From: Pelomyxa schiedti
Lineage: Eukaryota; Protista; Evosea
Assembly: GCA_020536535.1 (NCBI GenBank)
Contig: JAHLWZ010000602.1
Coordinates: 1 to 64,000 of the forward strand
Length of the DNA stretch: 64,000 bases
Direction: 5' to 3'
Shown: piece by piece, positions 45,201 to 50,318 of the stretch
Layout: the number at the start of each line of letters is the position of its first letter
Numbering within the stretch: position 1 is the stretch's first letter
The notes under the pieces: generated by a model
Database searches by the model: none
What the model was told of the DNA's origin: nothing
Seen by the model: only the letters and a program-made list of their open reading frames with translations
Position numbers and translations under genes: made by a program

Positions 45201-46933
45201 ATTTGAGGGTGGCAATTTCTTTGGATTGACACACTACTTCTTCTTCATAGTGCTTTGCCTCTACTTTAGCTTGTTCTAGCTCAAGAGTAAGTTTTTCTAA
45301 CTGGGCAGTCACTTCCTCTCGCACGGCTTTCTTTTGTTTGACAGCAGATTCTTCTGACTGTTTAAGTTCAGCTTGGCACCTTTCCAATTCATTTTTGAGA
45401 TCACGGATTTTCTTTTCATTGTGCGTCTTCTCAGATGCCATTTTCTTTTCCAATACCGTCAAATGGGAGTGCAATTCAGTGAGTTGCTGAAGTTCTGTAT
45501 CAGCAGACGGCTTGCTGCCAGTACTTTTCACCTCCAGAGATTTAATTCGAGACATCAACTCCTCTTCCTTTGCTGCTCGAGAGGCTTCATTTTCTTGCAT
45601 TTTCTGTTGCTTGGAAAGCACATCCTCTGTGCTGCGTGAAAAATGTGTGTGCATTGGCGTAGAGGGAGGAAAATGTTAGTAGAGGAAAAACCTTTGAGTT
45701 TTGTGTTTTCTGCAGTCATTTCCTCCAGCTTGGCTTTTAAAGCATCAACATCTTTTGCTGTTTCATGCTTCAAACGTTTGGTAGATTTATCTCTCTTCTC
45801 CACTTCTGCCTTAAGTGTCTCTTCAGACTTGGTTAATCTGGAAACTTGTTCCCTCAATAGAGTGATTTCATCCCCACTGGATGATGGGGGGGCTGTTTGG
45901 GATGACAAGGGAGCCTTTGTAACAGCAGGTGTATCAACTTCAGTTGCACTCGGTGCAGGGATTTCTTCTTTACTGGAGTGGCCTCGGGAATGATCTTTGG
46001 TGTGTGATCCACTCTCTCTGTGTTCCCTTTTACTATGCGACTCTTTATGAGGCACAGGAGCAACTGAAGTATCCGTAGTTGTTGTAGTGGTTGTAGCACT
46101 GGTAGTAACACTGGCAGTGGATGTTGGTGTTGATGCTGATGCTGACGATGACGATGACGATGACGATGTCGAAGTTGAGGTGGAGGTGGAAGTTGAGGTT
46201 GTGCTTGACTTGGAAGCACTGTCCCCTTTTTCGGGCTTATCTTCAGCCTCAAAGTCAACTTTTTCTTCATCTTCATCTTCCTTGCAGAGATTTCAGTGTC
46301 AGATATAAAAGAGAAGAAGATTACTTCAGCTTCTGACAATAAAATATCCGTTTCGTCCTCTCTAAGTTGGGTAAGTAAATTTGCGAAATTGAAGCTGGAA
46401 TGTACGCTGCTCCTGCACCCATGTTTTCTGAAGAAAACTTAATCTGGAAGGAATGAGAAAGGAAGGGTGAAACGTCCAACACACGAGTAAAGAAATCGGG
46501 GGGCCCTTGGCACCCTTTTTCTTGAGGATAAACGTGGCAGGCTTTACAGCACCACCAAGGTCAGCATAGTCACTCATGTTGACTGTGACTTTGCCCAAGG
46601 CTTTTTTCTTCTTTCCTTTATCTTCTTTAACAGAAAATACGATATTTTTGGCGTCCTTGGGTGTTGATTGGTTTTGTTTGTATAGGAAAAAGGGATGTGG
46701 AAATGATGTACATAAGAAGAGCCCTCCTTAAACAGTGTGCAATTGACTGTGACAGTCTCGTTCCATTCACAAGTTCCCGCCTTTACAGGCTTGCTGGGTG
46801 TTGTGCCTTGATTTTCTTTCTTCGTGCCTCGCTTCCAAGACACGGAAGCCGAAGTACACGCATCGGGAATCCCATTCGCCATTACATACGTCACCTTGTA
46901 CTTTTGCTTTATAGCCGTCTTCTTCTTGAACAT
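42257..46933 (-). CDS. NT-C2 domain - long coiled coil - Dilute (DIL) domain protein
   Basis: VSWKRGTKKENQGTT...CEWNETVTVNCTLF (NT-C2); heptad-rich exons; QFFSQLCYWINARLFNQL, QAANLLIMDK and LNPVQLSHFL (DIL). Confidence 0.85.
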
Positions 46934-47259
46934 CTTCGGTGAGTGGCAGCCAACGTCACGAGGTGGTGTTGTCTCCTATATTTGTTAGTTAAATAAGAAT
47001 GACCTCATTCTTTTAGTTGGTGTTGTTCGCAGGGGATTAGTGCCTTGCCTTGTCTCCACTTAATTTTGTTTTTTTTGGCTTCAAATTGTCTTGAGCTCTC
47101 ACCAGCGTTTCTGTGAAGGACAAAAAAAAAAACCCACGAAACAAACAACAAAAAAAAAAATCGGTGCCACCAAGGGACGCCGACAGATCGCAACCCCCCG
47201 CCAACGTAAAAAAAAAAACTTTGCGCCGAACACCACAATAAAAAAAGCCAAGTGAAGGA

Positions 47260-49251
47260 ATGTCGTCGTCACCGAGCCCCCGCGACGTGTCTCCGTCGGT
47301 CCCGAATTCGCCGCAGCAGCAGGCGCGCGAGGACGTGTTCACGCACTTCGAGACCGCGGAGCCGCTGGGGCCCAACGAGCGGGAGCTCGTGTGCCCCATC
47401 TGCCTGGACCTGCTGAGCCACCCGGTCGTGCACCCCGAGTGCCGGAGCACCTTCTGCCTGGGCTGCGTCGCCCGCCTCGAGTCGTGCCCGCACTGCCGGG
47501 CAAAGATATCGCCCGGCGCCAAGGGGCTGCCCGAGGCCCCCAACGTGGTCCGCAACCTGGTCAACAGGGTCAGGATGAGGTGCCTCGACTGCGGCGCCGT
47601 GTGCCTCAGGGAGCAGTGCCACCAACATTATCGAGAGGTGTGCCCAATTGTTTGCCCAAATGCCTGCTCTCAAAAGGTACTTTTTCTTCTTTCCCCCCCC
47701 CCCCCTTTACCCCACCCTTCCCGTTTTACAATAATAATGTTACTTCTGAGAATGGGTTTATATTTTGTATAGAAAATACACAACTTTTTTTTTGTTTTTA
47801 ACTGCTTGGGTTGGTAGATAACAAGAGCTACTTCCGCCAACCATGTGCATGTGGCTTGCACAAAGGCTGTGTCCCGCTGTGCTGCTTGGGATGTTGGGTG
47901 CTCCTTCACATCGGCAAGTCTCAGTTTTTTTGTTTGTTTGTTTGTTTGTTTGTTTGTTTGTTTGTTTGTTTGTTTGTTTGTTTGTTTGTTTGTTTGTTTG
48001 TTTGTTTGTTTGTTTGTTTGTTTGTTTGTTTGTTTGTTTGTTTGTNNNNNNNNNNNNNNNNNNNNNNNNNNNNNNNNNNNNNNNNNNNNNNNNNNNNNNN
48101 NNNNNNNNNNNNNNNNNNNNNNNNNNNNNNNNNNNNNNNNNNNNNTTGTTTGTTTGTTTGTTTGTTTGTTTGTTTGTTTGTTTGTTTGTTTGTTTGTTTG
48201 TTTGTTTGTTTGTTTGTTTGTTTGTTTGTTTGTTTGTTTGTTTGTTTGTTTGTTTGTTTGTTTCCGAATAGGTCTAACAAAGTCTTGATCAGTTGCGTGA
48301 GGCCCTCCCTGAACACGAAGCGGACTGCCAACTGCTTAAACTTCGACCAGCGCTAAAGGTACTAGTACCAAGTGGCACAGTCTTTCCCTATGCAGGGGAT
48401 ACCAATAGTTTCGTTCCCCCTGTAAGTTCACCCTTTTCCCTTTACCCCCCGCCCCCAACCAACTTTTCTTACCTGAACACAAAACCCACTTGAACACAGG
48501 GCTTCCTGCCATGTGACGGCCGCCACTTGTCCCGTGATGAGTATTCATCACTCTTCCAGGCCCTTGGGTACCGCTACGGCCGGGTCTCCATTCCCAGGTC
48601 CTCGTTGGCCACAAACACCACAGTGATCACAAACCCCTCTTCATCACTCCCGCAATCATCCTCGTCATCCTCATCCCCGTCGTCCTCATCATCTTCTTCT
48701 TCATCTCCATCGTCACTCCCGACTCCCTCAGTTTCCCCCCCTCCCATAATGATATCCGCGTCCGCGCCCTCGTCCGCACCCTCTTCGTCGTCGTCCTCGT
48801 CGTCGTCCTCATCCCATCATGATGATTTCTGCCTGCCCGATTACCGCGGCCGCTTCATGCGCGGCGTGAGCGGCAGCTCGTGCCTGGACCCCGACGCCGA
48901 CGCGCGGACGGCGATGCACTCGGGCGGCAACACAGGAAACTCGGTCGGGAGCATACAGAGGGATTCCGTGAAGAGCCACGCGCACATTCTGCCGTGCGCG
49001 GCTCTGGCGACTCTGCAAGACGCACATATGGGATTCCAGGTCTCCTCAAATGGAGCCAAAGTTGGTGTGTAGTTTGGGTTTTTTTTTTCCCCCCTTCCCC
49101 CCTGTTCTGTTCCATTCGTTTTACCTTAGTTTGCAGTAACACCTATTTACCATTTTTCTATCCTACAGGGTTGGTTGTGGGAACTTCAGAGTATGGGGCT
49201 GCCGAGACGAGACCCCAGAATGTCTATGTGAACTACATAATTAGGATCTAA
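47260..49251 (+). CDS. RING + TRAF-type zinc fingers + phage tail-collar domain protein
   Basis: CPICLDLL...ECRSTFCLGC...CPHCR; CPNACSQK...HVACTK...GCSF...EHEADC; PSGTVFPYAG, GFLPCDGRHLSRDEYSSLFQALGYRYG, FCLPDYRGRFMRG, ETRPQNVYVNYIIRI*. Confidence 0.85.
47930..48263. repeat. (TTTG)n microsatellite within an intron, spanning an assembly gap
   Basis: Pure TTTG array on both sides of the N run. Confidence 0.98.
48046..48145. other. Assembly gap (100 N)
   Basis: Run of N. Confidence 0.99.
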
Positions 49252-49561
49252 CGAAACAGATTTTGGCAATAAAAGAGAAAATTTTGTTGTTGTGCCCATC
49301 TTTGTTTGCTGTGACACACCCCGGGTGTGGCCTATCTCAGGATGCAATTGCACCCCCACAGTATCTAATAGATCTAAACAAATTTTTTATTGCGAAATCA
49401 CAAACAACGTTCTTTTTTCTTTTCAAGTTTTTTTTGGTAGTTAATCAACGGTTACACTCGTTGCCGGTTGACCTGTAACACCGACCTACAATACATACAA
49501 ACAACAATCAAAAAACCAAAACAAACCCAAACAGTTCACAGCTACGACAACCTACGCGGAA

Positions 49562-50318
49562 ATGAACGACGGAGCAGAGATGACGATAATTGTGGACGAG
49601 CCAAAGGTGGTTACTTTTGACCCCAGCGTAAACCCCGATCCCCCGCCTACGTACCCCGCCAGTGCCATGGGCTACCCTCCGCCGGCTCCCACAATAGTCG
49701 GCGGGCCGTATCCTCCCCCTGGCGCGATAATGTACCCATCTGGATACCCACCGCCGGCCCCTGGCACAGTGTACCCCGCTCCGGGTGTGTATCCGCCTGG
49801 TGCCGTGGCGTACCCGCCTGGTGCTGCGCCCCCCACTGTTGTCTACGTAACGGCGCCTCCTGTGGCAGTGGAGATCAAAAAGTGCGTACATAATATATGG
49901 GAAAAATGAAGCTGAAATGAGTGCCGAAAGTCATTTTCTAATGGACGCAGGGATGATGACCATGATCACCGTGATTGCTCCCATATACCTGACTACATGG
50001 GCCTTTCGGTTTGTTCACTGACTCTCTGACCTGGAGTTAATTATTACAGATTTTCAACATGCTGTGCTGCTTCTTTATCATCGGCATCATTGCCTTGATC
50101 AAGTCATCTGAAGTTCAGACACACAGGAGACACAATGGTACATAACCAGCAAACCTAAAACCCAACTTAACATAACTCAAGAGTATGATGCTGCCCAAGC
50201 TTCATCCAGAACAGCCCGTACACTCAACATATTTGGAATTATTTTCGGGTCAGTGTGCTGGGTCCTGGTAATAATTCTGATCATAGTGCGCGTTATCAGC
50301 ACCATCGCGTACTATTAA
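49562..50318 (+). CDS. CD225/dispanin (IFITM-like) membrane protein with Pro/Tyr-rich N-terminus
   Basis: Spliced sequence IPDYMGLSIFNMLCCFFIIGIIALIKSSEV...YDAAQASSRTARTLNIFGIIFG...; YPP repeats; 4 exons. Confidence 0.87.

Follow-up and report, generated by a model that had tools for sequence, protein, structure and literature searches.

The anaerobic amoeba Pelomyxa schiedti possesses a real, expressed nuclear gene, Pelo_7662, which encodes a fusion: in front stand the RING and zinc fingers of a TRAF-type ubiquitin ligase, and behind them the receptor-binding tip of a phage short tail fibre. The N-terminal half combines a variant RING with three TRAF-type zinc fingers and, in a structure model, most resembles TRAF6. 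Judged by homology, the C-terminal half is a complete tip of the bacteriophage T4 gp12 type with a collar, an HxH metal site and an ETRPxNxxVNYII strand. The gene resides in a window of 64,000 nucleotides (assembly GCA_020536535.1, contig JAHLWZ010000602.1, positions 1 to 64,000 of the forward strand) to which all coordinates refer. In the literature searched there was no paper on a Pelomyxa collar domain or a TRAF-collar fusion, nor any eukaryote with a phage receptor-binding protein on a ubiquitin-ligase scaffold.

Positions 47260-49251 (+) constitute a single gene of five exons. The product, KAH3760501.1 (429 aa, here P0287), is publicly titled "hypothetical protein Pelo_7662 [Pelomyxa schiedti]", and it contains each exon translation as a consecutive substring. 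The gene model derives from this public protein, the splice-site letters and, from the end of exon 2 onwards, RNA contigs. All features are on the + strand. Exon 1 (47260-47676, aa 1-139) is an open reading frame from the ATG at 47260, and its translation equals P0287 1-139. It encodes a Ser/Pro-rich N-terminus, the variant RING (aa 45-79, 47392-47496), the first TRAF-type finger (aa 108-128, 47581-47643) and part of the second. Intron 1 (47677-47817, GTACTT...TGGTAG, phase 0) is given by its splice-site letters and implied by P0287. Exon 2 (47818-47913, translation equal to P0287 140-171) completes finger 2 (to C153, 47859) and opens finger 3 with C160 and C167. Intron 2 (47914-48292), placed by the RNA contigs of runs X1 and X2, is of the GC-AG type with a GCAAGT donor at 47914 and a GATCAG acceptor (CAG 48290-48292); it harbors a (GTTT)n microsatellite (about 47929-48264) and an N gap (48046-48145). 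Exon 3 (48293-48421, P0287 172-214; RNA pieces 48292-48421 in X1 and X2) completes finger 3 with H179 and C183 and goes on to a linker of 12 residues and the opening strand of the collar, PSGTVFPYAGD. Introns 3 (48422-48499, GTAAGT...ACACAG, phase 0) and 4 (49065-49168, GTGTGT...CTACAG, phase 1) lie within the collar- and tip-coding regions, respectively; their GT..AG joints, 48421>48500 and 49064>49169, are present in all three single-cell RNA runs. Exon 4 (48500-49064, aa 215-403), covered by RNA contig without a joint, encodes the collar core (GFLPCDG...LFQALGYRYG), a Ser/Pro-rich loop (about aa 245-322, 48590-48823), the FCLPDYRGRF strand, the DPD motif and the HxH metal site H374/H376 (48977-48985). 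Exon 5 (49169-49251, aa 403-429 and a TAA stop, translation equal to P0287 404-429; RNA pieces 49168-49253) encodes the C-terminal strand GAAETRPQNVYVNYIIRI. The RNA contig coordinates continue across a masked stretch of exon 4 (48753-48817), and the Ser-rich stretch is coding and retained in the mRNA. To the sequence-only reading, in which the phage-type module was broken by spliceosomal introns and a Ser-rich loop, the coding nature of this stretch adds a correction.

The N gap could in principle reflect an assembly artefact that fuses two unrelated loci, one with a RING/TRAF gene and the other with a collar gene. No examined DNA contig crosses the gap; the DNA contig of X4, which has 12 additional repeat letters at 48249, begins within the (GTTT)n repeat. 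The RNA contigs settle the matter. Those of runs X1 and X2 have a loose end immediately 5' of 48292/48293 of which 30 letters are identical to 47883-47912, i.e., to the last 30 letters but one of exon 2, a sequence with a single occurrence in the window. Thus, splicing joins exons 2 and 3 over the gap, and in contigs of 1180 and 1016 nt exon 2 sequence is joined directly to exon 3 in frame. Therefore, the gap is not a join of unrelated loci. Furthermore, the exact third-finger spacing C-x6-C-x11-H-x3-C is restored only when both sides of the gap are joined, and the public gene model, which is independent, agrees exactly. With spliced RNA connecting both sides we reject the artefact, the probability of which is negligible. 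The initial expectation that the gap would turn out harmless was borne out by the spliced RNA, cDNA across the gap having been suggested as a check; the finger split across it, however, is the third and not the second. A GT donor at 47918 was also considered; combined with any AG acceptor it creates a frame problem, and the RNA loose end shows the GC donor at 47914.

In the N-terminal half the zinc fingers are readily recognized. The Pfam model zf-TRAF (PF02176) matches P0287 with E 7.1e-7 and 30.3 bits, above its cut-off of 27, and exon 2 alone with E 0.0053. The pattern C-x(2-6)-C-x11-H-x(3-4)-C occurs in three units, C108/C111/H123/C128, C132/C136/H148/C153 and C160/C167/H179/C183, all CCHC fingers with x11 spacing. 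The sequence-only reading thus rightly proposed a RING with TRAF-type fingers and undercounted the latter by one. The RING itself is present, yet departs from the canon: the best E value of the Pfam RING models is 1.4e-4 (about 22 bits) on P0287, where they stay below their cut-offs, and 2.5e-5 on exon 1 alone, and in an alignment of exon 1 to RING1B Ser63 occupies the position of the His ligand. The other seven Cys ligands are intact. In four paralogous RINGs the same His is absent (S/N/N/A), yet all keep a His 3-5 residues ahead of Cys-3. This conserved upstream His looks like a shifted zinc ligand, and from its conservation among the paralogs His58 is proposed as the substitute. The residues I47, P77 and R80 (after the last Cys), which we take to be at the usual E2-contact positions of RINGs, are present. 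The AlphaFold model of the N-terminal half has a pLDDT of 86.6; its best solved match is TRAF6 RING-ZnF1-3 (3hcs_A, E 1.1e-7), and it also matches the TRAF6-Ubc13~Ub complex and the RINGs of TRAF6 and RNF125. Because of the non-canonical RING with Ser63 for the His ligand, the putative ligase activity is not assured.

The identity of the C-terminal half is evident from several comparisons. Collar (PF07484) matches P0287 with E 5.9e-12 and 45.8 bits (cut-off 24), starting at aa 199, and exon 4 alone with E 3.3e-9. The Collar motif G..P.G[WFY]L.CDG ... LF..LG..YG ... F.LPD.RG is contained in the protein with its conserved columns, and the most conserved positions of the family (G, C, F-LPD-RG, HxH, ETRP-N) are kept. 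A family profile aligns with residues 339-525 of T4 gp12 (E 2e-13), whereby the HxH falls on the HKH of gp12; the columns of H374-A-H376 are at least 90% conserved in alignment A2 (H185/H187 there). The C-terminus GAAETRPQNVYVNYIIRI resembles the end of T4 gp12, ETRPWNISLNYIIKV, and exon 5 has a weak S_tail_recep_bd match. Direct phmmer matches include the solved short tail fibres 9cuy and 1ocy; all significant fold matches of the C-terminal half are phage tail fibres. An atlas feature search yielded exclusively Collar families, with scores of at most 0.87 which are leads at best. The module had been called a complete collar/tail-fibre module at the outset, and these comparisons, the Pfam search proposed as a check among them, confirmed this far above chance, with every element in place. 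P0288, the nearest relative, shares 36-45% identity across the whole domain; its short GAGDLVST loop occupies exactly the position at which the disordered Ser-rich loop of about 80 residues is inserted in the Pelo_7662 collar. In the monomer model the collar parts beside the insertion have a pLDDT of 85-94, and the tip proper a pLDDT of about 50, a value as would be expected for an intertwined trimer. With so low a confidence in the monomer model it is sequence homology that supports the fold assigned to the tip proper.

What connects the two halves is short. About 12 residues, QLLKLRPALKVL, separate Cys183 from the start of the collar; they were modelled with a short helix only, and no TRAF-N coiled coil is present in them. 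A Pfam scan of the whole P0287 (E up to 1) produced no MATH match, and residues 199-429 are the Collar/gp12-type tip. The statement that a MATH domain was replaced by a collar therefore holds as a description of the domain layout, not as an evolutionary event; a search for MATH (PF00917) in the species' own genome returned no candidate, with the controls silent as well, and this blank carries no information. Like TRAF6 and other RING-bearing TRAFs, the protein starts with a RING and TRAF-type CCHC fingers, and a trimeric C-terminal head is expected. Unlike these, it has neither coiled coil nor MATH/TRAF-C, its RING has Ser for His, and its head is of phage or bacterial type. RING-TRAF-finger proteins with other C-termini are known; TRAF7 has WD40 instead of MATH. 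Pelo_7662 is comparable in that a RING/TRAF-finger half is joined to another C-terminal recognition domain, which here, however, is a prokaryotic/viral receptor-binding domain instead of eukaryotic repeats. The tip is homologous over the whole region to the T4 gp12 receptor-binding domain (PDB 1ocy, 1pdi, 5iv5), sharing the collar, the HxH on HKH and the C-terminal ETRPxNxxxNYII strand. It differs by the 80-residue Ser-rich loop, by its location in a spliced eukaryotic gene and by the lack of a fibre shaft and baseplate. Identity to gp12 is low, and closer relatives are found among bacterial and viral collar proteins that are uncharacterised.

Where did this tip come from? Outside Pelomyxa schiedti its relatives are all bacterial or viral, at 38-48% identity, and for this reason a prokaryotic or phage origin is supported, as suggested originally by the label of a horizontally acquired phage-type module. 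The best relatives are in MAGs of Myxococcota, Verrucomicrobiota, Bacteroidota and Spirochaetota and on phage-size IMG/VR contigs; being scattered across phyla at this level of identity, they point to no donor lineage which could be named. Around Pelo_7662 neither phage genes nor a fibre shaft were found; the adjoining genes look eukaryotic, and the tip-coding region now holds two spliceosomal introns. In a collar-domain tree the tip groups with P0288 and tips linked to MACPF proteins, and the tip of the paralog Pelo_16082 is placed elsewhere. In AU tests a common origin was rejected neither for the two TRAF-linked tips (p 0.14) nor for all five tips (p 0.24). The phylogeny which had been called for is thus compatible with one as well as with several acquisitions.

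The tip is not confined to this gene. Pelo_16082 (P0001), a paralog on another contig, likewise has TRAF-type fingers and then a gp12-type tip; the last two fingers are 26% identical to those of Pelo_7662, and the finger-tip junction is in the same place. In contrast, a coiled coil of about 35 residues precedes its tip, the fingers number four to five, and the intronless tip is only 27% identical to that of Pelo_7662 and is placed in the tree among other bacterial sequences. Its N-terminus, including any RING, is missing at the contig end. Two stonustoxin-type MACPF proteins of Pelomyxa schiedti also end in collar tips; in L004, a sister MACPF-collar copy, the tip motifs are seemingly lost. 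Since it terminates Pelo_16082 and two MACPF proteins as well, the gp12-type tip behaves as a reusable C-terminal head in this species. The genome also has many RING/TRAF-finger proteins with differing C-terminal modules; in one paralog (C1061) a C-terminal SH3_3 match is not significant (E 0.089). No TRAF-collar fusion was found outside Pelomyxa schiedti. The best 150 phmmer matches of P0001 are taken up by bacterial multi-collar proteins with scores down to 87 bits; above that score no other such fusion occurred, and the four matches on its finger region carry pentapeptide repeats, SPRY or kinase domains and no Collar. A word search with P0001 missed the Pelo_7662 protein, which was recovered by an alignment in which each exon had its own row.

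What might such a protein do? We give somewhat less than an even chance to the reading that Pelo_7662 is a cytosolic E3 with a trimeric phage-type tip aimed at prokaryotic surfaces. Neither a signal peptide nor a membrane segment is visible in the 429-aa sequence. The tip would form a metal-clamped homotrimer like gp12 and take over the jobs of both the TRAF coiled coil and MATH, i.e., gather three RING-finger arms and select the target. Phage tips target a glycan of the prokaryotic cell envelope, and the target of the Pelo_7662 tip may be read alike, although its ligand need not be a prokaryotic glycan. Recruitment would be to the surfaces of escaped prey or of the amoeba's own cytosolic symbionts, and ubiquitin would be built on or around these prokaryotes for disposal or control. 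The domain was probably acquired from bacteria or phages long ago, with introns gained since. Ubiquitin targeting to prey or cytosolic symbionts is plausible. The sequence-only reading pointed the same way, with ubiquitination of, for example, intracellular bacteria; its domain layout is confirmed, its functional part stays a proposal. The mammalian E3 RNF213 ubiquitylates bacterial LPS; the comparison is a functional analogy only, of a cytosolic E3 at a bacterial surface (hypothetical here), with no kinship of sequence or domains. A precedent for amoebal TRAF-like E3s in cell-autonomous defence is TrafE of Dictyostelium, which acts against Mycobacterium marinum (PMC10181826). In Pelomyxa schiedti a deltaproteobacterium and a methanogen live free in the cytosol (PMC10579272), which raises the question of how the host distinguishes and controls them.

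Microbe recognition is not the only way to account for this architecture. The tip could be a compact trimerisation scaffold, or bind an endogenous eukaryotic ligand, in a TRAF-like signalling or quality-control ligase. As is established for T4 gp12, tips of this type are obligately trimeric, and with only 12 residues and no coiled coil between fingers and tip the latter is the sole candidate oligomeriser; TRAF-finger scaffolds in this species also carry unrelated modules such as pentapeptide repeats with or without SPRY, which fits generic module shuffling better than a design dedicated to microbes. Yet a coiled coil is a cheaper trimeriser, and P0001 has a coiled coil in addition to its tip. 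The entire receptor-binding region is also kept, beyond the collar and with the distal part, and on the pore-forming MACPF proteins a targeting role of the same head is more natural. We consider the scaffold or endogenous-ligand explanation somewhat unlikely. If, on the other hand, the RING is catalytically dead, the protein could be a non-enzymatic adaptor or sensor comparable to TRAF1 which recruits ligases or signalling partners via its fingers. Ser63 and the Pfam RING scores, all below the gathering cut-offs, speak for such a loss. The upstream His retained in the four paralogous RINGs indicates a compensated ligand shift rather than decay, and the seven intact Cys ligands, the residues I47, P77 and R80, and the match of a high-confidence model to TRAF6 in the Ubc13~Ub complex make a dead RING distinctly improbable.

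A more deflationary view holds that Pelo_7662 is a young, neutral or decaying chimera without a selected function. Selection on the fusion is not measurable because no orthologue was found in another species, a finding which itself agrees with such a view, as do the microsatellite-like Ser/Pro expansion within the collar, which could impair it, and the L004 copy with its seemingly lost tip motifs. Against this, the frame is intact across five exons with clean splice sites, the transcript is correctly spliced in three single-cell libraries, the most conserved family positions persist, and the model is confident for the collar on both sides of the insertion. A gene without function is thus very improbable.

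Returning to the E3 with a phage-type tip: few natural binders of prokaryotic surfaces are as specific as phage receptor-binding proteins, and if the reading is true, cell-autonomous immunity or a means of symbiont control could arise simply by combining a phage aiming device with a host effector. It would likewise be a natural experiment on TRAF design in which a gp12-type trimer, as predicted, stands in for coiled coil and MATH, together with a RING whose zinc ligand is apparently shifted. The TRAF-tip fusion pertains to one species. An extended version, which we regard as unlikely, is that Pelomyxa schiedti domesticated phage tips as swappable recognition heads on two TRAF-type RING ligases and two stonustoxin-type MACPF proteins, which would form a modular cytosolic system for prey recognition or for policing obligate bacterial and archaeal symbionts in the cytosol.

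The gene at 47260-49251 of the window (+ strand) is real, spliced and transcribed. By its sequence the product is a predicted RING ligase of the TRAF-like kind, whose head is new and phage-derived. GenBank holds it only as 'hypothetical protein Pelo_7662 [Pelomyxa schiedti]' (KAH3760501.1, here P0287; 429 aa), encoded on a 117,997-base contig, and no description was found in the literature searched. P0287 was retrieved by searching with an alignment which carried the window exons as separate rows. The five exons were modelled from a reading of 46800-49800 and from the ORF listing: exon 1 (47260-47676), exon 2 (47818-47913, 3' end fixed by RNA contigs), exon 3 (48293-48421, starting in phase 0), exon 4 (48500-49064, RNA joints at both ends) and exon 5 (49169-49251, ending with a TAA stop), all on the + strand. 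Their translations are consecutive substrings of P0287, i.e., residues 1-139, 140-171, 172-214, 215-402 and 404-429, with Gly403 on a split codon.

Between exons 2 and 3 the assembly has an N run (48046-48145) inside a (GTTT)n microsatellite. The length of this repeat varies: a DNA contig (run X4) has 12 extra repeat letters at 48249 compared with the assembly. The 3' part of the gene is covered by reads of one DNA run and of three single-cell RNA runs, the latter from a single sample and study; the read contigs were compared over 48250-49400, beside the repeat. All three RNA contigs contain the joints 48421>48500 and 49064>49169, both GT..AG. Upstream of 48292/48293 the contigs from two RNA runs, X1 (1180 nt) and X2 (1016 nt), carry a further 255 and 224 nt, respectively, as loose ends. 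The final 30 letters of these loose ends are exactly window positions 47883-47912, a stretch occurring a single time in the window. This fixes the end of exon 2 at 47913, with GCAAGT as donor and, on the other side of the gap, CAG at 48290-48292 as acceptor. The intron 47914-48292 (length as assembled, gap included) is thus of the GC-AG type and contains the microsatellite and the N gap. By eye, no GT donor pairs in frame with any AG acceptor. In the one DNA run no contig was seen to cross the gap. The sequence-only reading had considered that the gap might join two unrelated loci and called for a transcript across it; the spliced contigs X1 and X2 link exons 2 and 3, and an artificial junction is excluded at the RNA level. 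Once exons 2 and 3 are joined the third TRAF finger (C160-x6-C167-x11-H179-x3-C183) regains the spacing of the other two.

Exon by exon, Pfam recovers the elements initially listed, RING, TRAF fingers and collar. Exon 1 alone matches RING models (best E 2.5e-5, under gathering cut-offs), exon 2 zf-TRAF (E 0.0053), exon 4 Collar PF07484 (E 3.3e-9, 37 bits, cut-off 24), and exon 5 gives a weak short-tail-fibre receptor-binding match. In the whole protein Collar (45.8 bits) and zf-TRAF (30.3 bits) each exceed the cut-off, and RING models score about 22 bits. The earlier observation is confirmed with four corrections: the fingers number three, not two, the gap intron is GC-AG, the RING is a variant, and the Ser-rich loop is coding.

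Modeling shows that the N-terminal half is a TRAF6-like RING with fingers. The AlphaFold model of residues 38-190 (mean pLDDT 86.6) has as best solved match the TRAF6 N-terminal domain (3hcs_A, E 1.1e-7, 155 columns), followed by TRAF6-Ubc13~Ub (5vo0) and TRAF5/TRAF6 (7l3l). The term TRAF-like is thus supported for this half. Residues 40-95 align best with the solved structure of RING1B (E 1.7e-6). A RING-like domain is present as claimed, yet Ser63 occupies the canonical His ligand position (CRSTFC vs CLHRFC). The seven Cys ligands are intact (C45, C48, C61, C66, C69, C76, C79), and I47, P77 and R80 occupy the usual E2-contact positions of a RING. Paralogous RING/TRAF-finger genes came up when the own genome was searched with residues 38-190. 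In the alignment the canonical His is replaced in four P. schiedti proteins: by Ser in the window RING (47392-47496), by Asn at L168:1396-1710 (-; contig C1061) and at L171:856-1014 (+; contig C1542), and by Ala in P0201 (KAH3763932.1). Each of the four has a His placed 3-5 residues ahead of Cys-3 (P-[VM]-x-H-x2-C). Judged from this pattern, the upstream His, His58 in the window protein, may be a shifted zinc ligand.

The C-terminal half is a complete gp12-type tip. A profile of 58 collar proteins aligns with T4 gp12 over residues 339-525 (E 2e-13) and with the crystallised receptor-binding domain 1ocy (E 6.5e-14). The conserved HxH of the profile, H374 and H376 in the window protein, aligns with the HKH of gp12, the zinc site of the gp12 structure. 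The C-terminus GAAETRPQNVYVNYIIRI is similar to that of gp12, ETRPWNISLNYIIKV. The window protein alone matches the solved short tail fibres 9cuy (E 2.5e-4) and 1ocy (E 0.07). A monomer model of residues 190-429 is reliable only for the collar (pLDDT 85-94) and poor for the Ser loop (44-59) and the distal tip (about 50); nevertheless all Foldseek matches are phage fibres (cyanophage A-1(L), T4 gp37, T4 gp12). The Ser/Pro-rich loop (40 Ser in 76 residues) stands in place of the short GAGDLVST loop of P0288, the nearest relative of the tip, and the following strand (FCLPDYRGRF, pLDDT 87) rejoins the collar. This loop, previously regarded as an interruption of the module, is indeed situated in the collar, but it is read through unspliced in all three RNA contigs, and record coordinates are unbroken over the masked 48753-48817. 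The linker from finger 3 to the collar has about 12 residues and no coiled coil.

Outside P. schiedti all relatives of the tip are bacterial or viral, which supports the proposed horizontal acquisition of a phage-type module. They include 'microcystin-dependent protein', tail-fibre and phage tail proteins, and Atlas clusters of Uroviricota and Bacteria. A donor lineage cannot be named: the closest relatives, at 38-48% identity, are scattered over MAGs of Myxococcota, Verrucomicrobiota, Bacteroidota and Spirochaetota, and phage-size IMG/VR contigs. The transfer is not recent. The tip-coding region holds two introns, the spliceosomal interruption noted at the outset, seen in RNA as the two GT..AG joints. 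A quick tree puts the window tip together with P0288 (SH-aLRT 91) and with MACPF-linked tips (94), and the tip of the paralog Pelo_16082 elsewhere; a single origin remains compatible with the AU tests (p 0.14 and 0.24). Among hundreds of matches with precomputed Pfam domains, zf-TRAF and Collar occur together in two P. schiedti proteins only. With the paralog as query, exhaustive phmmer gave no other TRAF-collar fusion above about 87 bits.

The earlier interpretation is partly supported: architecture and foreign origin are borne out, and the function, for example ubiquitination of intracellular bacteria, is conjectural. We propose that the tip would trimerise, providing oligomerisation and target choice in place of coiled coil and MATH domain, that the RING would recruit an E2 with His58 as substitute zinc ligand, and that the target would be a prokaryotic envelope structure. 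P. schiedti harbours a deltaproteobacterium and a methanogen that lie free in its cytosol, besides a clostridial symbiont enclosed in vesicles (PMC10579272). Cell-autonomous defence in Dictyostelium involves the TRAF-like ligase TrafE (PMC10181826). Given these two observations, a role of the window protein at microbial surfaces is plausible.

Three other explanations must be weighed. The tip might merely trimerise or bind a host ligand. The short linker with no coiled coil speaks for this, the retention of the whole gp12-like receptor-binding region against it; we hold it to be rather unlikely, though it is the most serious competitor. The RING might be dead, with Ser63 on one side and the intact Cys ligands and His58 on the other, which appears improbable. 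Least credible is a neutral young chimera: searches gave no orthologue in another species, but the gene is spliced and transcribed.

Collar domains are found at five loci of the genome, including the window gene. In Pelo_16082 (P0001; locus L002, contig C1079, - strand) a 35-residue coiled coil separates four to five TRAF fingers from the tip; the 5' end of the gene enters a (TG)n microsatellite where the contig stops, and the N-terminus is cut off. In contrast, the window protein is N-terminally complete including the RING, whereas only Pelo_16082 has a coiled coil between fingers and tip. L003 (94-1935, contig C414) and L004 (37-1776, contig C590) are long ORFs that combine, in this order, a MACPF domain of the SNTX type, the helical domain of stonustoxin and a collar tip; in fish stonustoxin the position of the tip is taken by PRYSPRY. 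The L004 tip seems to lack the HxH and ETRP motifs. L001 (1348-1989, contig C160) is intronless and encodes a collar/tip protein of 213 aa with a low-complexity N-terminus and no further domain; its neighbours are intron-bearing, eukaryotic-looking ORFs. The TRAF-finger relatives P0201 and P0273 (KAH3743744.1) carry pentapeptide repeats as C-terminal module, one together with SPRY. Such heads on the nearest relatives suggest that modules were widely swapped on the TRAF-finger scaffold in P. schiedti. The paralog at L168 (ORFs 1393-1710 and 691-1242, both -) comprises RING, TRAF-type fingers and coiled coil, followed C-terminally by about 90 residues for which the sole hint is an insignificant match to bacterial SH3_3 (E 0.089). 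Downstream of the window gene the next gene (49562-49909, +) begins Pro/Gly/Tyr-rich, with repeated YPPP and GxYPP motifs.
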